43,765 nucleotides of DNA, from sequence record ON286972.1; one strand, given 5' to 3'. The notes under the pieces were generated by a model that did no database searches, was not told the DNA's origin, and saw only the letters and a list, made by a program, of their open reading frames with translations. A program made the position numbers and the translations under genes. Positions 8,174 to 42,856 of this stretch are shown piece after piece. Position 1 is the stretch's first letter, and each line of letters starts with the position of its first letter.

Positions 8174-9136
8174 GTGAAGAAACTAGACTTAAACGCAATT
8201 TCCGAAGAAGTACTGGATGAATGTTTTGCGAATGAAGAAGTCAATCCATTGGAAGCAATTGAACCATCAGAAGTTATTGAAGATGATATTCCACATAAAG
8301 TTCGTAGTAAAAGTAACATTAGTCTCAAGCGTCCAGTAGGTGTGACTAATGAATCCATCATCGAAGAGATTCGTGCTGGAATTAATGTAAAAAAGAACAC
8401 TGACCTATTACTTCGTTATAACTATGGTATGATCGTTGATGTTGCTTCAAAGTGTACATGTTATATTCCGTTTGAAGATAAAATTGCATATGGTGTAGAA
8501 GGTTTTATGCGAGCACTTAAAACCTTTGATCTTAGTAAGAATGTCAAATTCATTACATATGCAACAACGTCCGTTTATATGACTATGTATAATGAAAGTT
8601 CAGATGCAAATTACATGGTGTACTTACCACGTTATATGAGCGTTCATAACATCCAAGTACGTCGATTTAATGAATCATATCAACGTGAACACGGTAAGCG
8701 ACCTACACCAGAATTAATCTCTGAGAGTACTGGTATCGAGCTTCAGCACGTTAAGAACTGTTTGTTATACCAGAATGCATATACGACTCTTGATGCACAA
8801 CTGGGTTCAGATTCAGACGGAACCCTTGGGGATATTCTGAGTTCATCTGCTCGTGATTATAACCTTAATGTTGATAGCATTTGTAATCCATTACGTTATG
8901 CAATCACAGAAATCATTGACGAATTGAGTACTAAAGAACGAGAAATTATCATGCGTGTTCATGGTCTTGGGGATTACAAAGCAGAAACCCTTCGTGAAAT
9001 TTCTGATAATGGATATGTTGATGATAAAGGAAACATTGTTAAGTCCCGTTCATCTGTGCACCGAAAATATAGTGAAGCTATTCAAAAGCTTAAAAAAATA
9101 GTACTTGAAAAAGGGTACGAATACGAAGATTTCTAA
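8174..9136 (+). CDS. RNA polymerase sigma70-family factor (divergent)
   Basis: regions 2 (EGFMRALKTFDLSKNVKFITYAT), 3 (GKRPTPELIS..TLDAQLGSDSDGTLGD) and 4 (LSTKEREIIMRVHGL..ETLREI) align with RpoD-type order. Confidence 0.9.
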   Translation: MKKLDLNAISEEVLDECFANEEVNPLEAIEPSEVIEDDIPHKVRSKSNISLKRPVGVTNESIIEEIRAGINVKKNTDLLLRYNYGMIVDVASKCTCYIPFEDKIAYGVEGFMRALKTFDLSKNVKFITYATTSVYMTMYNESSDANYMVYLPRYMSVHNIQVRRFNESYQREHGKRPTPELISESTGIELQHVKNCLLYQNAYTTLDAQLGSDSDGTLGDILSSSARDYNLNVDSICNPLRYAITEIIDELSTKEREIIMRVHGLGDYKAETLREISDNGYVDDKGNIVKSRSSVHRKYSEAIQKLKKIVLEKGYEYEDF

Positions 9137-9137
9137 A

Positions 9138-9170
9138 GAAAAAGGGTTGACTTAGGTCAGCCCTTTTTTT
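9138..9170 (+). terminator. GGGTTGAC/GTCAGCCC hairpin element (copy 1, no -10 box)
   Basis: AAAAAGGGTTGAC-TTAG-GTCAGCCCTTTTTTT. Confidence 0.85.
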
Positions 9171-9179
9171 ATGGGACAA

Positions 9180-9680
9180 AATGGATGTTCATGATACAAT
9201 GATATTGTACAATTCTGTTGGCATGGATGACATGAACCTGATCCACTCGAAAATGTAGAGGGCAGTTGAGCAGTCCAGCAGTGCGAAGTGCAGAAGAAAC
9301 CCGTCAGATGTGGGCATATTATGAACCCCTCACGGCAATGCGGCACTATAAAGAACCACGTTAGGATGGCTGGTGGTTCCTCGATAGACATATAAGGATA
9401 ACACCTTACGAATTATCTAAGGGAGAGTTATCAAATTTTGTACAGGAAAGTTGCGTCCAAAATTTGAGTACTCACATTAAGTATTTGATTGCATAGATAC
9501 TTAATGAAGATACACTATGTTTAAAAGTGTAGACCGTCATATGAAACTGAAGTAGAGAGAAACAGGATGACCCGCTTTCGTACTCATTAAGAGTAATCTT
9601 CAATGCAATAGCTCTGATACCATCAGCGTCAAATTCCCCTCCCAGCGGGGGGAAGAAAAATCCCTTCCTCAAATCCCGTC
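9180..9680. ncRNA. candidate structured noncoding RNA or hairpin-rich cis element
   Basis: no credible ORF, higher GC than flanks, at least 7 stem-loops; TGnTACAAT at 9192-9200. Confidence 0.35.
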
Positions 9681-9694
9681 AATATTAAAAGTCC

Positions 9695-9723
9695 TTGACA
9701 GTTATTAATCATTCGCGTAGAAT
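9695..9723 (+). promoter_or_regulatory. sigma70 promoter
   Basis: TTGACA-17-TAGAAT. Confidence 0.8.
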
Positions 9724-9787
9724 ACGTAGTATTAGAAGCGAACAGACATCTCGAAGAGATGGATGACTAACTATTAAGGAACATTCA

Positions 9788-9997
9788 ATGAATACTACAA
9801 TCTTTTTAATTGTTGCTCTTTCAATGCAATCCGGTGTACAAATTACCCCTATGAATTCATTAAACCAATGTTTTTCTGTACGTGATAGTACATACGAACA
9901 AGTAAACAAAAATTCTTGGATGACAGTTAGTGAAGAACAAATGTGGTGTTACAAAAGTGATATTAAAGCGAAATTTATTGTAGGACAAACTCAATGA
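9788..9997 (+). CDS. small secreted two-Cys protein
   Basis: hydrophobic N-terminus, AAGGA RBS. Confidence 0.7.
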   Translation: MNTTIFLIVALSMQSGVQITPMNSLNQCFSVRDSTYEQVNKNSWMTVSEEQMWCYKSDIKAKFIVGQTQ

Positions 9998-11121: not shown

Positions 11122-11400
11122 ATGTCTTTTACCAAAGAAGAACGTGACCTTATTAAAAAAGCAATCTGGTTTTATGCTAATGAAGGGGAGTGCGATGAAG
11201 AAAAAGCACGTGAACTGTGTAATATCCTTGAGCAGAAACAAGAACTGAAAGTTTATCGTATCCGTGTTTTGGATGACGGGGATCGTATTGTCCTAGCTGA
11301 AACAAAAGAAGAAGCAGAACAAATCTTCACTGATAAAAACGAAAATCCACATTGGATGGAAGAAGTCTGTGAAGTAAAAAAAGGTACTTATATCGATTGA
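11122..11400 (+). CDS. hypothetical protein
   Basis: AGGA RBS. Confidence 0.75.
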   Translation: MSFTKEERDLIKKAIWFYANEGECDEEKARELCNILEQKQELKVYRIRVLDDGDRIVLAETKEEAEQIFTDKNENPHWMEEVCEVKKGTYID

Positions 11401-30400: not shown

Positions 30401-30951
30401 TGAAACGAAGTTCTAATGTCATTCGCGAACGATTTCGTAAAGTAAAAACTATTAAGTACGGGACTATTGCTCTTGTACTTAGTAGTACTTTTATTATGAC
30501 AGGATGTGAACGCTCTGAAGATATTTCTGTATATCAGAATGTGGACCAATGTAAAAGAAGTGGTAGCAATCCGGTACAGTGTGAAGATGATTATAAAAAA
30601 GCACTAACTGAATCGGAAAAGGTAGCACCAAAATATAGTTCACAAAGTGATTGCTCTAGTGATTTTGGTAATCAGTGTCAACAGCATAGCTCTGGATTCT
30701 TTTGGATGCCAATTATGAGTGGATTCCATAGTAGTGGTAATGGGTTTGCTAGTCAACCACTATACAACTCTAAAGGGAACTACTATGATGCTGGTGGTAA
30801 CTCCTACGGTAGCAGTACTGCAAAAGGTACAACACGTACTGTATCAAGTTCCGCATTAGCTCCAAAACCTCCTACAACGACCACAATCACCCGCAATGGG
30901 TTTGGGTCTTCAGTAGCCAGAAGTGCCGCTCACACGAGTTCTGGTGGATAA
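30400..30951 (+). CDS. ygiB: DUF1190 / YgiB-like lipoprotein
   Basis: MKRS..FRK leader, MTGC lipobox, YQNVDQC, APKY...DC..FG, FWMPIMSG, APKPPTTTTITRNGFG match enterobacterial YgiB. Confidence 0.9.
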   Translation: MKRSSNVIRERFRKVKTIKYGTIALVLSSTFIMTGCERSEDISVYQNVDQCKRSGSNPVQCEDDYKKALTESEKVAPKYSSQSDCSSDFGNQCQQHSSGFFWMPIMSGFHSSGNGFASQPLYNSKGNYYDAGGNSYGSSTAKGTTRTVSSSALAPKPPTTTTITRNGFGSSVARSAAHTSSGG

Positions 30952-30952
30952 T

Positions 30953-30980
30953 AAAAAAGCCCACATTAAGTGGGCTTTTT
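30953..30980. terminator. bidirectional intrinsic terminator
   Basis: AAAAAAGCCCAC-ATTAA-GTGGGCTTTTT between convergent blocks. Confidence 0.9.
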
Positions 30981-30981
30981 G

Positions 30982-33006
30982 TTATTTGTGTTTTATGTGT
31001 AAAGTGTCTAATATTGTATTGAACAATGATTTAGCAGAAATCATGATTACTTGATCAAAATCTTTAGTATAAGAAATATTAGCAGTACTGGAAGAATCTT
31101 TCACCTCATCCGGTAATGCATCAAACTCTTCTTTTTCCATAATCTTTTCAAGTTCTTCACGAGAAATGGCTTTTACGTTTTCAATAGTCCTTAGTTGTAT
31201 ATTATAATCTTTATAATACGAAACTAAGTTCGTTGCGTATGAACCATCTTTAGATGCTGTTCCAGTAAAATCATAACATCCTGTATCAGTACTAACCCAA
31301 TCGATTTTCCCTGAACTACCACTATATACACCTTTGTTGAACTTAATGTTAACAACATCACCAATAGTTTTCAATATACCACCTTTACATTCATTAAATG
31401 CGTTTAATTGATAACTTGTAGTCATATAGAATTTCGGTTCTAATGTAACAGTATCACCTACAGTTGCTTTCATATCAGAAACACTTAAGAACAATTCATT
31501 AAATCCTTTTGAATAAGTCTTGGTAATTGTTGTTCCATCCCTGTTAGTTACTGTGTATTCTAAGTCCAATTCACAAATACTATTCAATGATAAGTAAGGG
31601 ATATCAAATTTATCAGTACTAGCATCATAAGGACATCTTGAGGATGGTAGTATACCAGTAGGGTTTGGTACGTATTGAACTTTTGTTAACTCATACCCGC
31701 TTGCATTCGCTGGTGTAACTGTAATAGACGGTGTAGATATTCCTTTCATTCCACAGAAGTATATGTTATCTGGAAAATCATTTATTACGAAGTCAGTGAC
31801 AGGAATATCATAAGTATCTTTATCAGTCCAATTAAGAACAACATTAGAACTGGTTGGATCAACAATATGTTCACTAGAACCACAGAAATATACTGATTTG
31901 GTATTAGTAATCATTAGTAATGTTTTGGATGATGAGTTCAATTCAAGAACATCTTTCACTTCAAGACCAGATGGTAATGTCAATGGTAACTTCGTAAATG
32001 ATGTTAAATCTTGTTCATCTTTAACACCACTAGTCCCCGCCGGAAACTTACCTGAACCATAGAAAACACCTTTATTCGTCATGAAATACATGAACGGGGT
32101 TGATGTTCCTTTGTCAAATAGTTGAATGTCATCACATGTTAAACCATCAGGTAAATCCACTTTAGATGGAGTTCTATAAACACCAGGCTTAATACCACCT
32201 TCACCATTACTTACATCACCTAGTACATATAAATCTTTACCTAGTTTCAAGAACATTGATTTATTTTTAGCACACAAGAATGTATCATATGATTTATCAT
32301 CAATTGGTAGCTTGGTATATTCGGTGTATGTAGGCATTGAATCATCAATCCACGAACTATCACCACTAATGTAAATGTGATTGTTTCTGTCAATATAATA
32401 TGAATACACATCAGTACTGTTCATATATAAAGCATTTAGTGCATTTGTTTTCACTAAGTGATTGAACTTAAGAACTTGTTTTCCATCGTACTTATGGGAG
32501 TTGACACCAATATCACCATTTAGGCTACTACCAATTGAATATATATGACCACGTGGTAATAGAACTTGAACACCACTTTTGGTTAAATTATATTTGGAGT
32601 GCAAGAGATCGTTATATACAACTCTAACTTTCTTAAAGATATCAGTACATTCAATCCACGATTTAGATGGTGTACCATCCATTCCTATTATTGCCGGATC
32701 ACCATAATAATAAGCTTTATTTTCATATGATATTTTAAAAGATGATTTACCATCTTTTGTATTAGCACTGAAGTACACATCTTTACTATCTTTAATTGGA
32801 TAAGTACTATTCTCTACAAAAGTATTATATGAGATATCGTTGTTAGCACTATTAAGAACAAAAGAAGTAGATGTACTATTGGACTTATAGACTGCTACGG
32901 AAGATGTATCACTGAAATCAATTTTAGTGAACGTATCTTTGTATGTTTCGTTTAATAATCCTACATAAAAAACATCAGTGCCATCCATCAGTAACGAATA
33001 TAGCAT
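30982..33006 (-). CDS. RCC1-like beta-propeller protein, 3' part of a frameshifted gene
   Basis: LYVLGDVSNGEGG, FYGSG, YFCGS blades; joins 33919 ORF if 4 nt are removed. Confidence 0.65.
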   Translation of the reverse strand: MLYSLLMDGTDVFYVGLLNETYKDTFTKIDFSDTSSVAVYKSNSTSTSFVLNSANNDISYNTFVENSTYPIKDSKDVYFSANTKDGKSSFKISYENKAYYYGDPAIIGMDGTPSKSWIECTDIFKKVRVVYNDLLHSKYNLTKSGVQVLLPRGHIYSIGSSLNGDIGVNSHKYDGKQVLKFNHLVKTNALNALYMNSTDVYSYYIDRNNHIYISGDSSWIDDSMPTYTEYTKLPIDDKSYDTFLCAKNKSMFLKLGKDLYVLGDVSNGEGGIKPGVYRTPSKVDLPDGLTCDDIQLFDKGTSTPFMYFMTNKGVFYGSGKFPAGTSGVKDEQDLTSFTKLPLTLPSGLEVKDVLELNSSSKTLLMITNTKSVYFCGSSEHIVDPTSSNVVLNWTDKDTYDIPVTDFVINDFPDNIYFCGMKGISTPSITVTPANASGYELTKVQYVPNPTGILPSSRCPYDASTDKFDIPYLSLNSICELDLEYTVTNRDGTTITKTYSKGFNELFLSVSDMKATVGDTVTLEPKFYMTTSYQLNAFNECKGGILKTIGDVVNIKFNKGVYSGSSGKIDWVSTDTGCYDFTGTASKDGSYATNLVSYYKDYNIQLRTIENVKAISREELEKIMEKEEFDALPDEVKDSSSTANISYTKDFDQVIMISAKSLFNTILDTLHIKHK

Positions 33007-33983: not shown

Positions 33984-34140
33984 TCAATTAAATGGGGAAT
34001 CTTTAACAAATGAATTCATGATGTACTTGATGAATTGCCCATACCAACGGATTCCTCAGTCCCAGCATACCACATGGTATTATCGAACTTTTTATCATTG
34101 TAGTATCATAACCACACCAAACATCATCAACATTAGTATT
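33984..34140 (-). pseudogene. decayed relic of a propeller-array gene
   Basis: NTNVDDVWCGYDTTMI / KFDNTMWYAG (1-nt shift) / SFVKDSPFN* resemble blade 1 and C-terminus of neighbours. Confidence 0.7.
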
Positions 34141-35491
34141 ACAACAATTGTATTTCTGTGAGTGTTTGATATGTTGTACCGTTGTACACACCTCTCCAAT
34201 ATACCCTACCTTCAGTACTAACCACTAATAATCCATATGTTGTAAACCCAAGAGTACCACCAACATACATAGCATCTTTAATTCGAATACCAATGTCTTC
34301 ATATGTAAATGAAGCGACTGCTCCCGCTTGCCACGAAGGACTAGCGTAGTAATCACTATAAACACCATGTGCTTTATATATTGATGTTGTTCCTGGTTCA
34401 AAAATTACAGTTCCACAGTAGTTCATTCGTATTTTAGTACTGGATGAAGTCGGTACATTTATACCTATGCCATCTTTTATCCCTGTAGTTAGGACGTTAA
34501 AACCACCCGCCACACGGTTGACGTCATTCTCACCGATTAAAAACATACCAACGTTGTAGCCCATATAATATACACTGCTACTGCCATTCCAGAAAGAAAA
34601 ACCACCACCATTACCACAGCGATATAGTTGTGAATTTGAGCAGTACATCATACCTTCGTTTGTCGCATCAAATTCATCTGCTGTTCCTATTGTAGCTACA
34701 GTAGTCCACGTTTTAATCACTTGGTTTGTACTAGCTGGTGTTTGTATACCATATCGTATATTATATCCCTTACCAACGATTGTACCATCTTCTAATTTAG
34801 CATAAAGTACAGGTCTATTACCAACAAAATACATATTATTGTGTGACATGTCTATTGTGCATCTTAATGAAACTACTTTTTGTGTCAATTGATTATCTTT
34901 AGTAAAAGAAGTAAAGTAGTAATCCGATGTTGAGTTGTTTATTAAACCTTGTATTGACAATCCCATATACCAGATTTCACCATTGCTGTTTAATGCTGCC
35001 AAAATACAACTATATTTTGAAGTGTATGCTGGTGATGTTGTTGAAGTTGCTGGTCCTTTATCATATCCACCACAGAATACCATCTCCACAACTTCACCTA
35101 CGTTCGAAAAATAAGAAGATACATTGATAAAACCATTTGTTATAAAAGGTGCTGTATTCATACTTGAATGTGTGAATATCCCATTTGCATATACACCACA
35201 AAAATGATATGAACCATCATTATCTTGGACTATTATTCCATTTGATAGTAACCAAAAATTGTTTACATTTTTTCTTACTAATTCAACTCCTGCACCATTG
35301 GTTGGTGTTATACCAAAAGAAACATATTTTGTTTGACCAATACCATATAAATTTCCATTAGTTGCTAGTATTGCACCAAACCAGTTCCCACCACCATTCC
35401 TATCATGACCCATACCAATGGAGTCAAATTTCTTCACAGTAGGGACTTCAACTTTATTCCCATACTCTAGCATTCTAACAAAAGGTAACAT
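34139..35491 (-). CDS. MLPFVRM-leader RCC1-like beta-propeller protein (450 aa)
   Basis: true start at MLPF with AAGGAGG RBS; LYGIG, IWYMG, VYWRG blades. Confidence 0.85.
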   Translation of the reverse strand: MLPFVRMLEYGNKVEVPTVKKFDSIGMGHDRNGGGNWFGAILATNGNLYGIGQTKYVSFGITPTNGAGVELVRKNVNNFWLLSNGIIVQDNDGSYHFCGVYANGIFTHSSMNTAPFITNGFINVSSYFSNVGEVVEMVFCGGYDKGPATSTTSPAYTSKYSCILAALNSNGEIWYMGLSIQGLINNSTSDYYFTSFTKDNQLTQKVVSLRCTIDMSHNNMYFVGNRPVLYAKLEDGTIVGKGYNIRYGIQTPASTNQVIKTWTTVATIGTADEFDATNEGMMYCSNSQLYRCGNGGGFSFWNGSSSVYYMGYNVGMFLIGENDVNRVAGGFNVLTTGIKDGIGINVPTSSSTKIRMNYCGTVIFEPGTTSIYKAHGVYSDYYASPSWQAGAVASFTYEDIGIRIKDAMYVGGTLGFTTYGLLVVSTEGRVYWRGVYNGTTYQTLTEIQLL

Positions 35492-35555
35492 ATATCCTCC
35501 TTTATTCATTATATTATATTTAATCAAAAAAGAAAAGCCAGTACAGAGTACTGGC
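35460..35555 (-). repeat. array junction repeat 1 (hairpin, T-tract, TAAATA, RBS, leader codons)
   Basis: GCCAGTAC-TCT-GTACTGGC TTTTCTTTTTTGATTAAATATAATATAATGAATAAAGGAGG..ATGTTACCTTTTGTTAGAATG. Confidence 0.95.
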
Positions 35556-35566
35556 ATTTAAAATAA

Positions 35567-36742
35567 TCAAAATGTAGGAAGTTTGAATTCTCTCATAACA
35601 GATGAACTGCTTGCAGATACATTATCTGGTGATTTCCCTGCGTAGTATAATTTATTATCAATGAACATATACAATGTTGCATCATTTCCTGCTACAAGTG
35701 ATTCACTTTTCTTAAATTTAACACCACTAGGTAAAATTGCTTCAACAAATGAACCTGATTCTCTTGTAGTATTATTTGCCAATTGACCATTGTTATTATA
35801 ACCAGTACTATAAATTTTACCTGAACTATAATATACGAGTCCACGAGTACTAGTGTTTTCTATTCGAATGAATTCACTATCATCTGGGACTGTAGTTGAT
35901 AGAACTGGGTTTAACTTATAAGCAGATGATACATTATTATTACCCAATTGACCATAACCTTGAAAGCCTAGTGTATACATAGGACATGATTCTGGTGTGC
36001 CTTTTGTTATAATACCAATATAATTCACACTACAAAAAATGTCTATTGCTTCTGTAATAGGTGTACCCTTATATTGAACCCAAGGGAATACATACGATTG
36101 TTGCTTACCATTTCCCAAAGTACCGGAAGTTGTTGTCCCAGTACGCCACATTGTATCATCAAGTTTAATAATCCAGTTAGCTGTCGTTATCGATGAACAG
36201 AATTTTTTAACATTATCCACTAAAAATGTAAATTGATTATAATATGATGCAGTGTTTATACCAAACTTAGCACCAGTATTATCACCTAACAAATATAAAC
36301 TATTATCTGTACCTAAAATCAAAGCATAATCATAACCCACGTATATATCTTTAATTCTTGAAATTCCAAATTGTGTAAAATAGCTTGTACATTCTGTGAA
36401 TGTTGTTATATTATTGGTTGTATTATTACCTAGCCATTTATCTAAACCACTATAAAAGAATCTATCATCATTTGTGCGTATTAGACAAAAAGCGTTCATT
36501 GTACTGCACCAAAAATCTTTAACATTGCTATATATTTTTGTCCATTCAGTTACTGCATTAGTATGACCTAAACCAAAAATTCCACCATTCTGAAGACCAA
36601 TAGCCCATATTGAACCATTTTTATCAAGCATCATTGTACATGTATGTGAATAACCACCCGATGGTGTAACTAATTTAACAAAATTGGGAATATATGGTAA
36701 AACTTTATTTCCATAATCCAACATTCTAACAAAAGGTAACAT
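35567..36742 (-). CDS. MLPFVRM-leader RCC1-like beta-propeller protein (391 aa)
   Basis: IWAIGLQNGGIFGLG, YTLGFQGYGQLGN, YSTGYNNNGQLAN. Confidence 0.9.
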   Translation of the reverse strand: MLPFVRMLDYGNKVLPYIPNFVKLVTPSGGYSHTCTMMLDKNGSIWAIGLQNGGIFGLGHTNAVTEWTKIYSNVKDFWCSTMNAFCLIRTNDDRFFYSGLDKWLGNNTTNNITTFTECTSYFTQFGISRIKDIYVGYDYALILGTDNSLYLLGDNTGAKFGINTASYYNQFTFLVDNVKKFCSSITTANWIIKLDDTMWRTGTTTSGTLGNGKQQSYVFPWVQYKGTPITEAIDIFCSVNYIGIITKGTPESCPMYTLGFQGYGQLGNNNVSSAYKLNPVLSTTVPDDSEFIRIENTSTRGLVYYSSGKIYSTGYNNNGQLANNTTRESGSFVEAILPSGVKFKKSESLVAGNDATLYMFIDNKLYYAGKSPDNVSASSSSVMREFKLPTF

Positions 36743-36809
36743 AATTCCTCCTTTATTCATTATACTATATTTAATCAAAAAAGAAATGCCAGCATCAAGT
36801 ACTGGCATT
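36710..36809 (-). repeat. array junction repeat 2
   Basis: same unit, hairpin with one mismatch. Confidence 0.95.
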
Positions 36810-36813
36810 ATTG

Positions 36814-38004
36814 TTATAGTTGTCTTGGTGTATCAAGTACATATCTATTTGTACTAGGACCACCATCATCATACGTTCCGGTTGAATATATATTTTTCAT
36901 ATCAGCAGTTAGAAAAGTACGATACGAACCGCGATATATTTTTATTTTATCATACATAGAATATGATATTTCTGCTGGCATTGGACATATAGTAAATCTA
37001 CCAATAGTAACATTAGAACCAACACCCAACGAACCAGCATAACTACTCGCATTTAAACCAGTTGCATATACACCAGTACTCGTAACTAGTATACTAGATT
37101 GTGTTGGGTATCCTGTATGAATTGAATACAAAGTTCCAGTTGGTAATGTCGTACTATTGCTCCCTAATACAGCAAGTGCCGAACTGGTTGTGGTATTGTT
37201 ACCCCATGCACCATTACTCGCTAAACCACCAACTAGAAACTGACGTGCACCAGTACTTGGATTCTCAACCAAAGCACTGACTGCACCACTTGAGCATCCA
37301 GTGTATTGTAACGTTTTTGTGTATGTTGTACTTGGTTTATATAAAGTATATTCATTAAATGGTGTCCATGTGGTACTGGTACTTATACCTGACGTACCAC
37401 CACCAATATATAAATTATTTTGTGTATCAAAAAACATTACACAGTTATTTGTTGACTGTATTTGTGCAATATCAACATTAGGCGTGACAGCTTTTACAAA
37501 TGATCCATCTGTTATTTGTTGAGTACTACCAGTACCATCAGCGAATTGTCTAGCCCCACTCCAACCAGTACTCCATATTGTATTATTATCCATTAATACC
37601 GTAAACCACGTAGTACCTCCATACATCTGTTTAATTGAAGTACTTGAACTTTGCGTGTACAAATTTTCAATATATTGGTTATAACTTAAAAACGTAGTAG
37701 TACTAGTTGGTAAACCAATATGATCACCATATCCACAATAAAAATAATTTGAGTCATTATCTTGTACTAACAAAGTTCCTTGTGACACCCAGAAATCTTT
37801 AACATTTTCTCTAATTAAGGTCCATGACTTTACTGCATTACTATTTCCTATACCAAACTTCCCAAAACTATTATTTCCACGTGCGTATAGTTGACCATCC
37901 GTATAAAGAACGACAACATCTAAATCAGTTGGTGTTATTTTCTTAATTTGAATAGGGACTGGTGTTATATTCCCATAATCAAACATTCTAACAAAAGGTA
38001 ACAT
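36814..38004 (-). CDS. MLPFVRM-leader RCC1-like beta-propeller protein (396 aa)
   Basis: LYARGNNSFGKFGIG, VYATGLN..GSLGVG. Confidence 0.9.
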   Translation of the reverse strand: MLPFVRMFDYGNITPVPIQIKKITPTDLDVVVLYTDGQLYARGNNSFGKFGIGNSNAVKSWTLIRENVKDFWVSQGTLLVQDNDSNYFYCGYGDHIGLPTSTTTFLSYNQYIENLYTQSSSTSIKQMYGGTTWFTVLMDNNTIWSTGWSGARQFADGTGSTQQITDGSFVKAVTPNVDIAQIQSTNNCVMFFDTQNNLYIGGGTSGISTSTTWTPFNEYTLYKPSTTYTKTLQYTGCSSGAVSALVENPSTGARQFLVGGLASNGAWGNNTTTSSALAVLGSNSTTLPTGTLYSIHTGYPTQSSILVTSTGVYATGLNASSYAGSLGVGSNVTIGRFTICPMPAEISYSMYDKIKIYRGSYRTFLTADMKNIYSTGTYDDGGPSTNRYVLDTPRQL

Positions 38005-38069
38005 ATTTCCCTCCTTTATTCATTATACTATATTTAATCAAAAAAGAAAAGCCAGTATCAAGTACTGGC
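37972..38069 (-). repeat. array junction repeat 3
   Basis: same unit; hairpin 38051-38069. Confidence 0.95.
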
Positions 38070-38075
38070 CTATAT

Positions 38076-39245
38076 TTAAACTGGTGAATCTAATACAAAT
38101 TCTAAACTACTAATGCCACCATATGTGACATTTGTCCCTGTGCTATATACAAAATTACCATCAGTTATATAAGTTCGGTTATACCCACCTGCCATCTGCG
38201 ACTTACTATAATCAAACCCATCAGGAACGATTGCTTTGGTATATACTAATGCATTATTAGATGTACCAATACCTAACATACCAGCTCCTGAAGATTTATT
38301 GTAGCCGCAACAATATATACCATCTGTTGTAGCAATAACTTGGTTATAATATGAAGTAATGTTAGCAATGCTTACTACATCACCGGGTGGCATTAGTGAA
38401 GCAGTTTGAACCTCAAATGCTCTATAATCACTGAGAGAACCATTTATCCCATCTGCTTGTGCACCAAATATTCTCGAACCGCCATTTGCGATGATGGTTT
38501 TACCAGTGGGATCAGTACCAATTGCCATTGCCATTGAAGTACTATTCTCCATATAGTACTTGATATTAATTGTATTTCTTAAGCTGGTAGGAGCACCATA
38601 ATATATAGTATATAACTTACCTCCTGAACTTGTAACTGCATTTACTCTTCCTGTATAAAATAGCCATCCTTGGTTTGTAACATAACCGTGCATTAAATTA
38701 CTTGCAAACAATTTAACAGGTAATTGATCTGCTGCGGTCGGAACAGTACTTTTGACGAATTTTCTAGCAACATTGTTAGTTGTTGTCCCATCACCCAACT
38801 GACCATCACCCCCTGCTCCAGTACTCCATATTGTTTGGTCTGTTAGTAATACACTTGTAGTCTGATAACTAACTGCTATATCTAATATTGGTAATGTTAA
38901 CGTATCGAATGTTGGCATAGCAGAAGTCCATATTGATACTGCTGCCCCTGGCATACCAACAGTTGTTGAACTTCCACTGTACCATATTTCATCATTGCTT
39001 TTCTTAATAACTATCGACGTGGCTCCCATCCAAAAATCTTGAACATCAGAAGTGCTAAAAGTCCATGTAGTAACAATATTTTTGTGACCTAAACCCAAAA
39101 GACCATTTGTATTCTCACCACGCACATATAAATCACCACTGTTTGTTAAAACAGCAACATTATAGTTGTTAGCTAGTATTTTTTTAATATTTGGTTTAGC
39201 AGGTGCAATATTCCCATACTCTAACATTCTTACAAAAGGTAACAT
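38076..39245 (-). CDS. MLPFVRM-leader RCC1-like beta-propeller protein (389 aa)
   Basis: LYVRGENTNGLLGLG, IWSTGAGGDGQLGDG. Confidence 0.9.
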   Translation of the reverse strand: MLPFVRMLEYGNIAPAKPNIKKILANNYNVAVLTNSGDLYVRGENTNGLLGLGHKNIVTTWTFSTSDVQDFWMGATSIVIKKSNDEIWYSGSSTTVGMPGAAVSIWTSAMPTFDTLTLPILDIAVSYQTTSVLLTDQTIWSTGAGGDGQLGDGTTTNNVARKFVKSTVPTAADQLPVKLFASNLMHGYVTNQGWLFYTGRVNAVTSSGGKLYTIYYGAPTSLRNTINIKYYMENSTSMAMAIGTDPTGKTIIANGGSRIFGAQADGINGSLSDYRAFEVQTASLMPPGDVVSIANITSYYNQVIATTDGIYCCGYNKSSGAGMLGIGTSNNALVYTKAIVPDGFDYSKSQMAGGYNRTYITDGNFVYSTGTNVTYGGISSLEFVLDSPV

Positions 39246-39309
39246 AATTCCTCCTTTATTCATTATATTATATTTAATCCAAATAAGAAAGCCAGTATCA
39301 AGTACTGGC
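39210..39309 (-). repeat. array junction repeat 4
   Basis: same unit; hairpin 39291-39309. Confidence 0.95.
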
Positions 39310-39315
39310 ATTGTG

Positions 39316-40425
39316 TTATTTCGGTAAATCAATTTTAGTAAAGACTGCAACATCCTCGCTTGCACCGGGAATGGCGTAATACGTTCCAGTACTATATACA
39401 TCTCCATTTTTGGTTAATATTGAAGTCAAACCATCACTAAAAAGAACATCCCTAATCTCACTAACTTCAACGGGTAATTGTAAATTTGTAGCACTATATA
39501 TAGCACCAGTTTGAGAATTGTTTAATCCCAAACCACGGTTCGCCCCAACACCCTTCTGATATGTACTGGTAATTACCATTTGTGTAGCAGTATTTAATGC
39601 AGGTGAATTCGTCATAAACAACGGAGAACTATTAGGCAAAGTACTTACAGGAACTGCACGGAATGTAGTCGTACCTGAACTAAGAAAGTTTGGAGTTTGA
39701 CCACATACGAAATATGATGTACCATTATAGTAATTAAATGCATTACCACCAATCGCTGCATCGATTACACCAGAACTACGTAATCCCCAAGTGTTAATTT
39801 GTGTTTGGTCCCCTGTACCATGCTGCCCACTGCTATTCCATCCAGAACTATATAGCTTATTATCTAATGTAATATACATACTATCATTTGCATTAGTCAT
39901 TACTTTACGCACGTTAGTAGCACATTGAGTTAATGTGTAAATCGATGATGAGCCAATACCTAAAGAACCACGATATCCATTATCTCCTGCACCATAGAGT
40001 ACTGAACTAGTGCTAAGTACAAATATTAAACCATTTGTACATACAATATTAGCAATTTCACTCACTGGTATAGCATTGGTAAACCAATTAGTCCTTTCAA
40101 CTAATATAGTACTGTAAGAAGTAGTTGTAGAAGATGAGAACCAGTACGTTTCACCCGATGTCCATATCGTATTATCATTTTTAATAATAACAAGTGTACG
40201 ACCACCCACGAAAAAATTAGAAACATCTGAACTTACTAATATCCATGAAGATACCGTGTTGTTATTACCATTTCCAGATTCACCACCTTGATTTCTACCT
40301 ATGTAATATAAATCATGTGAATCAGTCAATAAGAATTGACCCTGTGTAGAAGCACCAACTTTAATTATATTTTTAGGACCGGGTACAATATTCCCGTACA
40401 CTAACATTCTTCCAAAAGGTAACAT
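39316..40425 (-). CDS. MLPF-leader RCC1-like beta-propeller protein (369 aa)
   Basis: LYYIGRNQGGESGNG, LYSSGWNSSGQHGTG. Confidence 0.9.
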   Translation of the reverse strand: MLPFGRMLVYGNIVPGPKNIIKVGASTQGQFLLTDSHDLYYIGRNQGGESGNGNNNTVSSWILVSSDVSNFFVGGRTLVIIKNDNTIWTSGETYWFSSSTTTSYSTILVERTNWFTNAIPVSEIANIVCTNGLIFVLSTSSVLYGAGDNGYRGSLGIGSSSIYTLTQCATNVRKVMTNANDSMYITLDNKLYSSGWNSSGQHGTGDQTQINTWGLRSSGVIDAAIGGNAFNYYNGTSYFVCGQTPNFLSSGTTTFRAVPVSTLPNSSPLFMTNSPALNTATQMVITSTYQKGVGANRGLGLNNSQTGAIYSATNLQLPVEVSEIRDVLFSDGLTSILTKNGDVYSTGTYYAIPGASEDVAVFTKIDLPK

Positions 40426-40490
40426 AATTCCTCCTTTATTCATTATACTATATTTAATACAAAAAAGAAAAGCCAGTACTCTGTACTGGC
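40390..40490 (-). repeat. array junction repeat 5
   Basis: same unit; hairpin 40472-40490. Confidence 0.95.
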
Positions 40491-40498
40491 ATATTACA

Positions 40499-41641
40499 TT
40501 ATTTCCACGGTAGAAGTGAATCAGGAACTCTGGTTGGTACTCTAACGGCTGGAACATTTCCAAGTTCAGGTAAACCACTCATATACAAATTGTTATTTTC
40601 ATCAATTATCATTGAATAGAAATTATCAATTACGAAGCCTGAAATTCGTCTTCCTTCTAATGCATCAAGAACCATTTCGGTGAAAGTTAGTATATTTTCG
40701 GATGTTTGATTAACACCACATGCACCATAGGTATTTCGACCACAAGTATATAACTTATTATTATTTTTAACAACACATCCATTCCCTTCGTTGTTGGATA
40801 AACCACCCACCAACTCTATTTCACCTTGGAATGATAAATTGGGAATTAATGTACTCATTGGTACTGCTGATACTGTACCTACACCAGCTTGACCATATGC
40901 ATTTGGTGAAGCAACCTTCACTGAACCATCATTAAGAAATATATATGAAGTACGGTATGTATTTACAGCTTGTATAGCATTGGTGATAGTATTGTCTTTT
41001 GTAAAACTTAATATATTTGATGTTTTTGTACTACCAGGAGCAACAGTATTTCCTGCATACCAATAGGAGCCATCATCAAGTACTAACCCAGTACTGAGCA
41101 AAGAACAGCCATAACTTTTAACATTTTCTATAGTGCTGTATCTGAACGATGTGACATTAGCTGTTGACGCGTTACCAAATACACCACCTTCGCCAGAACC
41201 ACAGTAGAACCATTTTCCATTTTTTAAAAATACACGCAAATTCTGCCCAACAGCAATACCATCAATATCATCAGCACTGACACCAAAATCAGTGAAGTAC
41301 TGGGTTACATCAATCCAAACCCCATTTGTATTTGTTCCGATTTGTGGCATTACTATACTAGCACCTGTGAACCAAATAGTTCCATCATTCTTAATGGCAA
41401 TGGAACCAAGAACACCACCCCAGTAACGTTCAATATTATTATTCACACGGGTCCATACGGTGGATGATTGTAATGAACCATTACCACCTTGTCCAAATGA
41501 AGATGAACCATACCAGTACAAGTCACCATTAACATGCAAATAAAAACGAGTATTATAATTTGCTTGTAATCTATTTTTAAATAGAGGTTTTGGTTCCGGT
41601 GCAATATTCCCGTACTCTAACATTCTAACAAAAGGTAACAT
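40499..41641 (-). CDS. MLPFVRM-leader RCC1-like beta-propeller protein (380 aa)
   Basis: LYWYGSSSFGQGGNG, LYTCGRNTYGACGV. Confidence 0.9.
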   Translation of the reverse strand: MLPFVRMLEYGNIAPEPKPLFKNRLQANYNTRFYLHVNGDLYWYGSSSFGQGGNGSLQSSTVWTRVNNNIERYWGGVLGSIAIKNDGTIWFTGASIVMPQIGTNTNGVWIDVTQYFTDFGVSADDIDGIAVGQNLRVFLKNGKWFYCGSGEGGVFGNASTANVTSFRYSTIENVKSYGCSLLSTGLVLDDGSYWYAGNTVAPGSTKTSNILSFTKDNTITNAIQAVNTYRTSYIFLNDGSVKVASPNAYGQAGVGTVSAVPMSTLIPNLSFQGEIELVGGLSNNEGNGCVVKNNNKLYTCGRNTYGACGVNQTSENILTFTEMVLDALEGRRISGFVIDNFYSMIIDENNNLYMSGLPELGNVPAVRVPTRVPDSLLPWK

Positions 41642-41710
41642 AATTTCCTCCTTTATTCATTATACTATATTTAATACAAATAAGAAATGCCAGTACTCTG
41701 TACTGGCATT
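41600..41710 (-). repeat. array junction repeat 6
   Basis: same unit; 11-bp stem 41686-41710. Confidence 0.95.
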
Positions 41711-41713
41711 ATA

Positions 41714-42856
41714 TTATTTCCACGGTAGAAGTGAATCAGGAACCCTTGTCGGTACATTTGTAGTAGACACCCCATCAAGATTTGGTACACCGCATGTATA
41801 TAAATTATCAGCATCGTCAACTAACATCGTATAGTTATATCCCCTACAAAAACTACTAACATTACGACCTTCTAATGCAGTAAGAATCATTTCAGTGAAT
41901 GTTGTTATATTTGTCGAGGTTGAACCAACACCACATTGTCCATTTGAATTAAGACCACATAAAAATAACTTATTATCATTTTTAATTATACAGGATGGTC
42001 CAGTAAGGTTTGTACCAAGCTCACCCACTAACTCTATTTCACCTTGGAATGCTAAATTTGGAATTAATGTACTCATAGGGGCTGGTGTTGTATTCCCAGT
42101 ACCTGCTTGACCACGTTCGTTGGAAGATGCAACTTTAACTGTTCCATCACTAAGAAATATATAGGAAGTTTCAATTGTATTGACTGCTTTAATTGCAGTG
42201 CTGATAGAAGTTTCTTGTGTAAATCTTAGCACGTTTTGTGCTGACGTTCCCGATATAAACGTATTACCTGCATACCAATATGTACCATCATTGAGTACTA
42301 ATGCAGTACTTCGAATTGCACAACCAGCACTTCGAACATTTTCTATAGTACTGTACGTGAATTGTGAAACGCTTGCCGATGAACCATTTCCGAATACACC
42401 ACCACTCCCAGCACCACAGAAGAACCACTTTCCATTTTTCAAAAATACACGCATACACGCAGATATAACAATACTATCAATATCATCAGCACTGACACCG
42501 AAATCAGCAAAGTGCGATGTCACATCAACCCAAACACCGTTAGTGTTTGATGCAATTACTGGAATAACAGAACTTGTACCAGTGTACCAAATAGTACCAT
42601 CTTTCTTTATCGCTATTGTTCCTTGAACACCACCCCAATATCGTACAACATTTGTATTGACGAGAGTCCATGCGGTTGAAGAGTTCAATGAACCATTACC
42701 ACCTTGACCATATGATGAAGAACCAAACCAATATAGATTACCATTGGTGTGTAAATAAAATTTGGCATCTGCCGAGCATTGTAACCTATTTTTTAATCGT
42801 GGTGCGGGTTCCGGTGCAATATTCCCGTACTCTAACATTCTAACAAAAGGTAACAT
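41714..42856 (-). CDS. MLPFVRM-leader RCC1-like beta-propeller protein (380 aa), close paralog of 40499 gene
   Basis: same length, identical first 17 and last 12 residues. Confidence 0.9.
   Translation of the reverse strand: MLPFVRMLEYGNIAPEPAPRLKNRLQCSADAKFYLHTNGNLYWFGSSSYGQGGNGSLNSSTAWTLVNTNVVRYWGGVQGTIAIKKDGTIWYTGTSSVIPVIASNTNGVWVDVTSHFADFGVSADDIDSIVISACMRVFLKNGKWFFCGAGSGGVFGNGSSASVSQFTYSTIENVRSAGCAIRSTALVLNDGTYWYAGNTFISGTSAQNVLRFTQETSISTAIKAVNTIETSYIFLSDGTVKVASSNERGQAGTGNTTPAPMSTLIPNLAFQGEIELVGELGTNLTGPSCIIKNDNKLFLCGLNSNGQCGVGSTSTNITTFTEMILTALEGRNVSSFCRGYNYTMLVDDADNLYTCGVPNLDGVSTTNVPTRVPDSLLPWK

Follow-up and report, generated by a model that had tools for sequence, protein, structure and literature searches.

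Several kinds of large or elaborate non-coding RNA have been described from phages and mobile elements. GOLLD and ROOL (and OLE) are large ornate structured RNAs, often encoded by phages or prophages, that have been shown by cryo-EM to form RNA-only homo-oligomers (PMC12286853). Here we describe an element of about 480 nt in Escherichia phage A4 (Asteriusvirus; ON286972.1), within a 43,765-nt stretch (hereafter the window; window position 1 is record position 311764). Like GOLLD and ROOL, the element is several hundred nucleotides long, has many conserved helices and pseudoknots supported by covariation, appears as a stand-alone gene in phage or mobile-element DNA, and is of unknown function; its palindromic or conserved loops could in principle mediate multimerisation. 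It has no sequence or structure match to their Rfam models, however, its hosts are Gram-negative (Enterobacterales, Xanthomonas), there are 3-4 diverged paralogues per genome, no tRNA gene is associated with it in the window, and the family also occurs as a core part of small integrative islands. As a descriptive class rather than a homology family, large ornate phage-associated ncRNAs would include it.

Other described systems share features with the element. ColE1 RNA II and the origin transcripts of phage T4 (oriF/oriG) likewise pair a strong promoter with a transcript of about 500 nt, with a G-rich element and a purine run near the 3' end; there are several copies per T4-like genome, and the element is carried by mobile elements that lack a replication initiator. 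The tertiary structure here is far more elaborate and conserved. HK022 put RNA, lambda nut sites and the EAR element, all agents of RNA-based processive antitermination, are promoter-proximal structured RNAs at the head of long phage gene arrays interrupted by terminators, but the present element is five to ten times larger. The packaging RNA of phi29 is a phage-encoded structured RNA that assembles through loop-loop pseudoknots and serves the phage's own DNA machinery, and is thus a precedent for an RNA part that a satellite might need to match; it is about 170 nt, single-copy and confined to phi29-like phages, there is no sequence relation, and a packaging role for the present element is pure speculation. 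Finally, Pseudomonas jumbo phage PA5oct, a distant relative of the Rak2-like phages, encodes ncRNA001 and ncRNA002 in ORF-free regions; ncRNA002 is 451 nt and makes up 1.2-5% of phage reads by RNA-seq (PMC7318152), showing that phages of this clade express abundant large ncRNAs. No homology to these was detectable: no shared motif was visible, and neither of our covariance models hit the PA5oct locus.

Sequence, structure and covariation of the element

The element lies in the longest unannotated gap of the window (651 bp, 9137-9787), between a sigma-70-family gene and the next annotated ORF; the next largest gap is 219 bp. The GC content of 9180-9680 is 0.417, against 0.348 for the window, at the 98.6th percentile of 501-bp windows. 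A first-pass annotation made from the sequence alone had proposed an undescribed structured ncRNA here, possibly driven by an extended -10, and every stem arm it listed is present (Table 1). Its main inference is supported, with four corrections. The outermost stem, TGGAT-GTTCATG / CATGAAC-ATCCA, spans the promoter and is not part of the conserved fold. CCTTA, which had been nested with GATAAC against a downstream TAAGG-GTTATC, pairs instead with the upstream TAAGG, as shown by covariation to TAGG/CCTA and TGAG/CTCA, and not with the invariant downstream TAAGGGAG; GATAAC/GTTATC is therefore a pseudoknot and not a nested stem. ATTGCAT, in the loop of the CATTAAGTAT hairpin, pairs with ATGCAAT to form PK2. 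Lastly, the conserved element runs from about 9207 to at least 9690, slightly beyond the 9180-9680 first proposed.

Table 1. Features of the element and its borders. Positions refer to the window; features are on the + strand. The last column gives the DNA arms of the first-pass annotation with their positions.
Feature	Position	Sequence or pairing	DNA arms
Sigma-70-family gene	8174-9136		
Terminator-like hairpin, end of the sigma-gene transcription unit	9144-9170	GGGTTGAC-TTAG-GTCAGCCC plus a T7 run	
Inferred promoter of the RNA gene	9173-9200	GGGACA, 16 nt, extended -10 TGATACAAT (9192-9200)	TGATACAAT 9192
Whole predicted RNA	9207-9690	about 480 nt	
Predicted 5' end and leader	9207-9236	5' end about 7 nt after the -10	
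Conserved leader motif	9209-9221	ACAAUUCUGUUGG	
Small leader hairpin	9222-9225 with 9231-9234	CAUG/CAUG	
Domain 1	9237-9432		
Hairpin	9238-9265	CUG.CC.CUC / GAG.GG.CAG, conserved loop GAAAAUGUA	
Hairpin	9270-9284	GCA/UGC	
Long-range helix	9287-9291 with 9343-9347	AGUGC/GCACU	
Enclosed helix	9301-9304 with 9332-9335	CCGU/ACGG	
Near-invariant internal loop	between the two preceding helices	AGAAGAAAC / CAAUGCG	
Hairpin	9353-9379	GAACCAC/GUGGUUC	GAACCAC 9353 / GTGGTTC 9373
Pseudoknot PK4	9364-9367 with 9415-9418	GGAU with AUCU	
Invariant strand	9383-9393	GAUAGACAUAU	
Hairpin	9393-9408 (upstream TAAGG 9393-9397)	UAAGG/CCUUA	
Pseudoknot PK1	9398-9402 with 9427-9431	AUAAC with GUUAU	GATAAC 9397 / GTTATC 9427
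Invariant strand	9418-9425	UAAGGGAG	
Helix P8 with enclosed P9	9425-9473		
Helix P8	9425-9428 with 9470-9473	GAGU with ACUC	
Hairpin P9, conserved apical module	9432-9466	CAAAUUUUG/CAAAAUUUG	CAAATTTTG 9432 / CAAAATTTG 9458
Domain 2	9474-9610		
Hairpin	9475-9506	CAUUAAGUAU/AUACUUAAUG	CATTAAGTAT 9475 / ATACTTAATG 9497
Pseudoknot PK2	9488-9494 with 9603-9609	loop AUUGCAU with AUGCAAU	
Hairpin	9511-9531	UACACU/AGUGUA	TACACT 9511 / AGTGTA 9526
Invariant strand	9532-9537	GACCGU	
Pseudoknot PK3	9536-9540 with 9567-9571	GUCAU with AUGAC	GTCAT 9536 / ATGAC 9567
Helix	9548-9552 with 9598-9602	UGAAG/CUUCA	
Hairpin	9555-9579	GAGAG/CUUUC, conserved loop that includes ACCCGCUU	
Hairpin	9582-9594	ACUC/GAGU	
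Small hairpin, ending in the first copy of the repeat AUCAGCGUCAA	9614-9632	CUGAU/AUCAG or GAUAC/GCGUC; in most relatives GACGA/UCGUC	CTGAT 9614 / ATCAG 9622
G-run hairpin	9634-9654	UUCCCCUCCC-AGC-GGGGGGAA, invariant G-run on the 3' strand	
3' tail	9655-9690	conserved CAAAUC	
Second copy of the repeat	9672-9682	AAAUCCCGUCAA	
Promoter of the next gene block	9695-9723	TTGACA-17-TAGAAT	
Next annotated ORF	9788-9997		

On this sequence alone, the fold is hardly distinguishable from chance. The minimum free energy of the RNA was -122.3 kcal/mol, against -112.5 +/- 6.9 for shuffled sequences (z = -1.43; 8 of 100 shuffles folded as well), and the minus strand gave z = -2.18. By contrast, the comparative evidence is overwhelming. 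Sixty-four distinct homologues (57-100% identity) showed about 100 base pairs with abundant compensatory changes, including at least four pseudoknots or loop-loop contacts. RNAalifold on 19 sequences predicted 58 pairs, 29 of them with compensatory changes. In the 5' half, 88.3% of cells were paired, against 33-38% when partners were slid; 32 of 53 pairs showed changes on both sides, against 8-12, and the covariation score was 0.278, against at most 0.053. In the 3' half, 83.3% were paired, against 39-50% for slid partners, with a score of 0.357 against at most 0.130; PK2 was 97.5% paired with 6 of 7 pairs covarying, and UGAAG/CUUCA and GAGAG/CUUUC were each 100% paired. Helices left out of the alignment model still held at 89-100% paired: the hairpin at 9475-9506 was 89.4% paired with all 10 pairs changing on both sides, and PK3 was 100% paired. 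The small hairpin following domain 2 is only weakly supported (74% paired, with one-sided changes only). Mutual information (MI/APC) on the 64 sequences gave almost only Watson-Crick pairs at the top and revealed P8, PK3 and PK4; the P8 pairs 9426-9472 and 9427-9471 were 97-98% Watson-Crick. Per-sequence tests were also made for PK1, PK4 and P8, and PK3 had at least 5 bp in 64 of 64 sequences, in 9 sequence variants.

The substitution pattern also indicates the strand. G-U occupied 325 cells and A-C 91 (3.6:1), so the + strand is the RNA. In the G-run hairpin, 84.5% of cells were paired and 9 of 11 pairs varied on one side only; these changes are C-G to U-G, with no pair changing on both sides, a pattern that fits pairing on the + strand as RNA. 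The two repeats change together across the family, including in Klebsiella phage RaK2. Three further pairings were considered. That of the leader CUGUU with the AAACAG loop of domain 2 was rejected because the loop changes to AAUACCG or AAACCG without a matching change in the leader, and that of ACCCGCU with AGCGGG in the G-run hairpin loop because the loop is not conserved. Pairing of the leader UUGRY with the RUCAR repeats is compatible in most sequences, with one compensatory case (RaK2), but informative changes were too few.

The comparative data refute the view that this is merely an AT-poor spacer with chance hairpins or short unannotated ORFs, despite the marginal folding energy of the single sequence. 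Small ORFs of 32-79 aa do overlap the region, and some GenBank records of relatives annotate 3-4 hypothetical proteins there. However, the longest stop-free stretch is 68 aa, against 68.6 +/- 16.5 in shuffles, loop indels are not multiples of three and often break the reading frame, and core sequence blocks are invariant across sequences that are only 57-70% identical overall.

The element matches no known RNA family in Rfam 15, among them GOLLD, ROOL, OLE, raiA, HEARO/omega RNA, RNase P, 6S, group I/II introns, riboswitches, EAR and known enterobacterial sRNAs. No hit was found in the window at gathering thresholds. At E<=10 on 9050-9850, only sub-threshold hits appeared: those over 9064-9237 cover the upstream terminator hairpin, where all weak hits align the terminator hairpins of sRNA models, and the few inside the core are at chance level (14-20 bits against 48-88 needed). 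No hit fell over the element in 13 paralogue loci or 6 bacterial loci. ARAGORN found no tRNA or tmRNA gene in the whole window. Resemblances noted by eye to RNase P, group I introns, T-loop/tRNA and 16S (for example, ACAG..ACCCGCUU against the RNase P P4 strand and UCAAAUCC against a T-loop) were not supported by any model. No description of this RNA was found in the searchable literature.

These results bear on the possibility that the RNA is a ribozyme or self-processing RNA, its conserved core catalysing cleavage (or cleavage and ligation) at the two identical AUC-UCGUCAR sites to release the G-run hairpin segment. The size, the pseudoknot density and the many invariant unpaired nucleotides do resemble large ribozymes, and two identical sites that change in concert flank a conserved segment. 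We nevertheless consider this very unlikely, given that no Rfam ribozyme model shows similarity, the flanks are not exons, and the concerted change of the repeats may partly reflect shared ancestry.

Distribution and genomic context

Among 50,697 phage records, 71-73 carry the family, all of them Rak2-like jumbo phages, with 3-4 diverged paralogues in every such phage examined. BLAST conservation covers 9137-9787 at 87-94% identity in Asteriusvirus genomes and about 70% for the core in other genera. Covariance models of the two halves scored 232.9 bits (9234-9472) and 180.5 bits (9456-9688) in the window, and a RaK2 copy that was not in the training set scored 137.5 and 64.8 bits. The core is single-copy in the window, where only the terminator hairpin repeats; similar copies of the latter, part of a repeated terminator(-promoter) module of this phage, lie at about 17035, 17392, 18765, 20049, 21682, 24150, 24880 and 26871, although the consensus scan did not list the hairpin upstream of the element. 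A scan restricted to 4-nt GAAG loops with stems of at least 5 bp, which would miss 5-nt CGAAG loops, found only two such hairpins in the window.

Phage A4 has three paralogous copies, at 65.1, 205.5 and 320.9 kb. The first-pass annotation had suggested an RNA polymerase-related regulator in view of the neighbouring sigma gene, but this link is coincidental, because other copies have other neighbours. The two other A4 copies lie after a hypothetical gene near dam, and between endonuclease VII and baseplate genes; the copies in Serratia phage BF, Cronobacter phage GAP32 and RaK2 have other neighbours again, and island copies follow integrases. No partner protein is conserved next to the RNA: the adjacent proteins in the window, in RaK2 and in the islands are unrelated, and the island core proteins have no informative PHROG or Pfam match.

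Outside phages, the element is a syntenic core part of roughly 10-12 kb integrative islands in Enterobacteriaceae, in the order integrase, RNA, CI-like repressor / HTH_35, two or three unknown proteins, resolvase, and defence cargo. These islands lack recognisable replication or packaging genes. The internal arrangement of the RNA also varies by class: the apical module of P9 sits, in one paralogue class and in the islands, in the ACUC/GAGU hairpin of domain 2 instead, modular behaviour that is typical of large folded RNAs.

The copies appear to be transcribed from their own promoters. The promoter in the window matches 9 of 12 consensus positions, with TG, and homologues carry aTGAAAC-N17/18-TGnTATAAT or TATACT at the same relative place; the TGAAAC box is absent elsewhere in the window. 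In jumbo-phage and island copies alike, the leader motif AAYYCUGWWUGR plus a hairpin is conserved. Downstream, the near-consensus sigma-70 promoter of the next gene block (11 of 12 matches) is not part of the RNA; it is one of 17 such promoters on the + strand of the window, against 0.5 expected.

Possible roles of the RNA

The best explanation for window ~9207-9690 is a stand-alone gene for a new family of large (about 450-550 nt), compactly folded non-coding RNA, to which, together with the inferences below, we assign a probability of roughly 0.6. No transcript data exist for any copy, the start near 9207 is inferred, and a further conserved motif in relatives suggests that the RNA may run somewhat further 3'. 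We infer that host sigma-70 RNA polymerase transcribes the gene from its own extended -10 promoter and that the product works as a folded RNA, not as a DNA site or an mRNA leader. Its near-invariant unpaired strands (the AGAAGAAAC/CAAUGCG internal loop, GAUAGACAUAU, UAAGGGAG, GACCGU, ACCCGCUU, the G-run hairpin and the two CGUCAR repeats) may form a surface recognised by a protein, or another nucleic acid, of the jumbo phage or of the shared enterobacterial host; in the absence of a conserved neighbouring protein, this step is pure inference. The phage would keep several specialised copies, and the islands one copy because it plugs them into the same phage or host machinery, in the manner of a satellite, a status inferred from gene content only. 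The machinery could be that of replication priming, transcription control, RNP or cage assembly, or the RNA could be a decoy. A simple picture of one promoter, one RNA and one 3' end does not explain all copies: some carry a covarying hairpin plus U-run (an intrinsic terminator) inside the conserved region, between the small hairpin and the G-run hairpin, and others have one between the promoter and the leader.

A replication origin, the alternative raised by the first-pass annotation, is neither shown nor excluded, but we consider it unlikely. In this scenario, the strong promoter makes a structured transcript that forms a persistent hybrid and primes leading-strand synthesis, as at T4 oriF/oriG or with ColE1 RNA II, the G-run/C-run hairpin and the purine run that follows being the hybrid-forming or processing zone. 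The jumbo phage would have several origins, and the islands would carry one so that the helper's replisome amplifies them into concatemers that a headful packaging motor takes up. Several dispersed copies per genome, a strong promoter at each, an invariant G6 run next to a C/U run followed by GAAGAAAAA, the place of the element in islands without recognisable replication or packaging genes, and the existence of satellites of jumbo phages (PMC12595487, PMC12772148) are in its favour. However, cumulative GC skew rises steadily through 9-10 kb with no turn at the element, the only sign change in the window, near 31 kb, coinciding with the switch of gene orientation. The element is GC-richer than its surroundings, with no DNA-unwinding element, and it is absent from 72,556 plasmids (PLSDB), which argues against an origin that host enzymes alone can use. 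No known origin transcript needs four conserved pseudoknots, and in one class a terminator sits upstream of the G-run. Spacing of the copies looks even in A4 and 121Q (gaps of 28-39% of the genome) but not in BF.

A cis-acting role in transcription control is about as doubtful. Here the nascent RNA, alone or with a phage protein, would modify RNA polymerase or switch a terminator (put/nut-like processive antitermination, or a giant attenuator) and thereby set the timing of the downstream gene array; in islands, read-through would run antisense into the repressor gene and act as a helper sensor. The window copy does head a 21-kb co-directional array (9788-30951) with many terminator-promoter modules, intrinsic terminators lie inside or just upstream of the element in two classes, island copies are convergent with cI, and the two identical repeats could compete for the same partner strand. 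Yet the A4 copy at 205.5 kb lies between minus-strand genes, the island copy in L038 has no co-directional ORF before the convergent cI gene, and the window copy is separated from the next ORF by that ORF's own consensus promoter. Moreover, conserved sequence continues 3' of the terminator, where it could not influence that termination decision.

A more speculative reading, which we regard as possible but less likely than not, is that the RNA is the shared plug between Rak2-like jumbo phages and a previously unrecognised family of roughly 10-kb satellite-like defence islands of Enterobacteriaceae. The jumbo phage would use several specialised copies as an essential part of its replication or transcription programme, for example as structured origin or primer RNAs or as an RNA-protein switch, and the islands would carry one copy so that the helper's machinery recognises, amplifies and mobilises them, or so that they can titrate that machinery as a defence. 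This would be the first RNA-based hijacking module of a phage satellite and a new functional class of large RNA.

Very few large, intricately folded bacterial or phage RNAs are known (RNase P, group I/II introns, tmRNA, OLE, GOLLD, ROOL, raiA and a few more), and each one has opened new biology. The present one lies in coliphages that grow on E. coli (by its GenBank record, Sharanji was isolated on K-12 MG1655), which makes it unusually tractable. At the least, the family deserves an Rfam entry, which would also stop spurious hypothetical proteins from being annotated across it. The maintenance of 3-4 diverged paralogues across several jumbo-phage genera argues for an important and non-redundant role, and the presence of the RNA as a fixed part of small integrative, defence-carrying islands suggests a molecular link between jumbo phages and satellite-like elements in Enterobacteriaceae, a topic that only opened in 2025 with a Pseudomonas example.

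The intergenic region and its homologues

The window comprised the last 43.8 kb of the 355.5-kb record of Escherichia phage A4 (ON286972.1), a Rak2-like jumbo myovirus of the genus Asteriusvirus, and was 100% identical to that record. The 651 bp between the sigma-70-family gene A4_181 and the next annotated gene were the longest unannotated stretch of the window; the next longest was 219 bp. GC was 0.417 against 0.348 for the window, at the 98.6th percentile. All of the complementary arms listed in the first-pass annotation were present where it had placed them. No tRNA or tmRNA was found, and no Rfam 15 family matched at gathering thresholds. At E<=10 only sub-threshold hits appeared: those over 9064-9237 covered the upstream terminator hairpin, and the few inside the core were at the level of chance. 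Taken alone, the sequence did not fold convincingly better than shuffled versions of itself (z = -1.43 for the + strand, with 8 of 100 shuffles folding as well; z = -2.18 for the minus strand), and the case for a structured RNA rests on comparison.

BLASTN located the region in 71-73 phage records, all of them Rak2-like jumbo phages of Escherichia, Salmonella, Klebsiella, Cronobacter, Serratia, Erwinia, Pectobacterium, Yersinia, Xanthomonas and Stenotrophomonas. Identity was 87-94% in Asteriusvirus and about 70% for the core in other genera, with several places per genome. In Escherichia virus TH47 the orthologue of the window's copy matched in three pieces spread over 1326 bp instead of 651 bp, so that an insertion of about 670 bp seems to interrupt the RNA gene in this phage. 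Pattern scans of IMG/VR, GTDB genomes and metagenomes were followed by searches with two covariance models built for this purpose, R1 for the 3' half and R2 for the 5' half, which together gave 64 distinct full-length members. The copy in Klebsiella phage RaK2, which was not used for training, scored 137.5 and 64.8 bits. The window held exactly one copy.

Coordinates of the features described (window positions unless a record or locus is named)
Feature	Position	Strand	Detail
Sigma-70-family gene A4_181	8174-9136	+
Hairpin plus T7 run ending A4_181	9144-9170
Promoter of the window copy	9173-9200		GGGACA-16-TGATACAAT
Leader	9209-9221		ACAAUUCUGUUGG
Match to model R2	9234-9472		232.9 bits
Match to model R1	9456-9688		180.5 bits
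Pseudoknot PK4	9364-9367 / 9415-9418		loop GGAU / AUCU
Helix P8	9425-9428 / 9470-9473
Hairpin module P9	9432-9466
Hairpin of ten pairs	9475-9506
Pseudoknot PK2	9488-9494 / 9603-9609
Pseudoknot PK3	9536-9540 / 9567-9571		GUCAU / AUGAC
Direct repeats	9622-9632 and 9672-9682		AUC(A)UCGUCAR
G-run hairpin	9634-9654
Downstream consensus promoter	9695-9723
Next annotated gene	starts at 9788
Short ORF annotated as a sigma-70-family sigma factor	11122-11400		92 aa
Composite terminator-promoter modules	17400, 18768, 21691, 24157, 24886, 26878 (also 9144-9170)		GGGTTGACTTCGGTCAGCCC plus a T-run
Convergence of + and minus gene blocks	30951-30982
Seven tandem paralogous genes	34139-42856	minus	about 370-450 aa
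Locus L122 of A4, with the class-III copy	A4 record 205446-206355	+	908-bp gap
Orthologue in Escherichia virus TH47	MT446416.1 145951-147276
Island of Citrobacter amalonaticus P55	L116:5211-14916
Island of a Buttiauxella MAG	L119:5054-~16700
Island of E. coli LR-29-1	L114:2959-13303
Pseudomonas phage PA5oct ncRNA002	L025:14452-14902		451 nt
Pseudomonas phage PA5oct ncRNA001	L025:764-999		236 nt

Covariation, strand and coding potential

Near-invariant blocks, including CGGCAAUGCGGC, UAUAAAG, GAUAGACAUAU, UAAGGGAG, GACCGU, GAAAC, ACCCGCUU, GGGGGGAUGAAA and CAAAUC, alternated with helices that change by compensatory substitutions. RNAalifold predicted 58 pairs, 29 of them with changes on both sides. 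With a hand-refined structure, the 5' half was 88.3% paired, against 33-38% when partners were slid by 1-3 columns; 32 of 53 pairs showed double changes, against 8-12 for slid partners, and the covariation score was 0.278 against at most 0.053. The 3' half was 83.3% paired against 39-50%, with 35 of 62 pairs showing double changes and a score of 0.357 against at most 0.130. A mutual-information scan of the 64 joined sequences placed almost only Watson-Crick pairs at the top, recovered every helix, and revealed three more contacts: helix P8 and the pseudoknots PK3 and PK4. When tested on an alignment whose model did not contain them, the 9475-9506 hairpin was 89.4% paired with all ten pairs covarying, and PK3 was 100% paired. 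PK3 had at least 5 bp in 64 of 64 sequences, in nine sequence variants, while PK1 (another pseudoknot), PK4 and P8 exceeded shuffled-loop controls and occurred in about 30 variants each. PK2 was 97.5% paired, with six of seven pairs covarying. The hairpin module P9 sat in domain 1 in some classes and in the ACUC/GAGU hairpin of domain 2 in others, a swap that is typical of peripheral elements in large folded RNAs.

Within the core helices, G-U occupied 325 cells and A-C 91, and the G-run hairpin varied only by C-G to U-G, with the G strand fixed. Pairing is therefore selected on the + strand, as RNA. Stop-free stretches were no longer than in shuffled sequence (68 aa against 68.6 +/- 16.5) and loop indels ignored the reading frame; the hypothetical proteins annotated over this region in some GenBank records are most likely spurious. 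A chance or coding origin for the signal is accordingly given almost no weight.

The two direct repeats changed together across the family, reading CGUCAA twice, CGUCAG twice, UGUCAG twice, and CUUCAAG twice in RaK2. No third, complementary partner was found. A self-processing ribozyme acting at the two repeats is considered very unlikely. A further motif, GUURAAC, followed the second repeat in most members.

Promoters, copies and neighbours

Nearly all copies were preceded by aTGAAAC-N17/18-TGnTATAAT (or TATACT), followed by a conserved leader AAYYCUGWWUGR and a small hairpin. The TGAAAC box occurred nowhere else in the window, whose general promoters are TTGACA-N17-TATAAT. In all, 17 TTGACA-N16-18-TAnAAT promoters were counted on the + strand, against 0.5 expected, and none on the minus strand. 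The long downstream array has many repeated composite modules, in which an intrinsic terminator hairpin overlaps a consensus sigma-70 promoter, the -35 TTGACT lying inside the stem and the -10 TATAAT following the T-run. One of the consensus promoters stood downstream of the window copy, so the next genes do not depend on read-through.

Three copies were located in A4, all on the + strand, at 65.1 kb, 205.5 kb and 320.9 kb, the last being the window copy. The 65-kb copy lay between two hypothetical genes upstream of dam, as in RaK2. The 205-kb, class-III copy sat alone on the + strand between minus-strand genes for endonuclease VII and baseplate proteins; locus-tag numbering of the A4 record restarts (A4_590 to A4_1) immediately after it. 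Copies in Serratia phage BF and Cronobacter phage GAP32 had yet other neighbours. The sigma gene, which the first-pass annotation had taken as a possible clue to an RNA polymerase-related role, is therefore an accidental neighbour, and that link is rejected. The short sigma-factor ORF, 2 kb downstream of the full-length gene, may be a region-4-only protein or an anti-sigma-like fragment. The paralogue classes were conserved across genera; the multiplication is thus old and each copy has been kept.

Terminators were observed in and around the element: conserved sequence continued 3' of a covarying intrinsic terminator in the island, RaK2 and class-III copies, and one class had a terminator between the promoter and the leader. 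Together with the long downstream array and its many terminator-promoter modules, these could point to a cis-acting antitermination or attenuation element, but some copies have no co-directional gene and we regard this reading as doubtful.

Integrative islands and interpretation

Unexpectedly, the scans also found true members in chromosomal contigs (R1 at 124-200 bits; R2 at 127-175 bits for the genome loci and L114, the E. coli LR-29-1 locus, and 153-177 bits for the metagenome island loci searched). These came from Citrobacter amalonaticus, Enterobacter chinensis, Silvania hatchlandensis, Buttiauxella, two other Enterobacteriaceae assemblies (strain RIT714 and an uncultured MAG) and many metagenome contigs; two of 5426 complete E. 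coli genomes also carried a copy. The RNA always followed an integrase on the same strand, of the tyrosine type or the large serine type, interchangeably, and in most of these loci a convergent CI-like S24 repressor gene faced the RNA. Extended loci showed islands of about 9.5-12 kb inserted in ppdD, between ytfL and msrA, or next to ffs. Their layout was as follows: integrase, RNA, (p165), CI-like repressor facing an HTH_35 protein, two or three proteins of unknown family, a small resolvase, and variable defence cargo (GmrSD in one island; nSTAND3 with AbiGi in another; DUF4326, DUF488 and a dual-OB protein in the third). We could recognise no replication, capsid or packaging genes. At least 22 loci shared this synteny, whereas no isolated temperate phage and no plasmid among those searched carried the RNA. 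Satellites that exploit jumbo phages were first demonstrated in 2025, in Pseudomonas (PMC12595487; commentary PMC12772148), in papers that do not mention an RNA; the islands described here may be satellites of Rak2-like jumbo phages.

A replication origin, the alternative offered in the first-pass annotation, remains a minority possibility. The dispersed copies, the strong promoters, the G-run followed by a purine run, and carriage by islands without replication genes would be in keeping with an RNA-primed origin of the T4 or ColE1 type. Arguing against it are the absence from plasmids, a terminator upstream of the G-run in one class, a fold far more elaborate than any origin transcript needs, and the lack of a skew signal: GC skew changed sign not at the RNA element but near 31 kb, where the + and minus gene blocks converge. 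Beyond that point, the minus strand carries the seven tandem paralogous genes annotated as putative DNA condensation protein, followed by a kelch-like protein gene at the end of the record. On balance we consider an origin unlikely.

By description the RNA belongs with GOLLD, ROOL and OLE, being large, ornate, mobile-element-associated and of unknown function (PMC12286853), but it is not homologous to them or to anything in Rfam 15. The distantly related jumbo phage PA5oct expresses an abundant 451-nt ncRNA, ncRNA002 (PMC7318152), which is GC-rich at its 5' end and ends in a terminator; it and ncRNA001, both supported by RNA-seq and located in the terminal repeat, are unrelated to the present family, ncRNA002 in sequence and structure alike. 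No publication describing this family was found within the limits of the literature that could be searched.

The observation of a hairpin-dense noncoding region is confirmed, and its main interpretation in the first-pass annotation, an undescribed structured ncRNA, is supported. The region encodes a member of a new family of large, multi-pseudoknotted, non-coding RNA, read from the + strand and preceded by its own conserved promoter sequence; for the bare claim of a structured RNA gene we estimate a probability of about 0.9. The finding is a real, apparently undescribed and experimentally tractable large RNA with an intriguing distribution, kept in several copies by Rak2-like jumbo phages and in one copy by a family of small integrative islands. 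We infer that it acts as a folded RNA whose invariant unpaired strands are recognised by a factor of the phage or of the common host, and that the islands keep it to connect to the same machinery, a statement to which, as a whole, we assign a probability of about 0.6.
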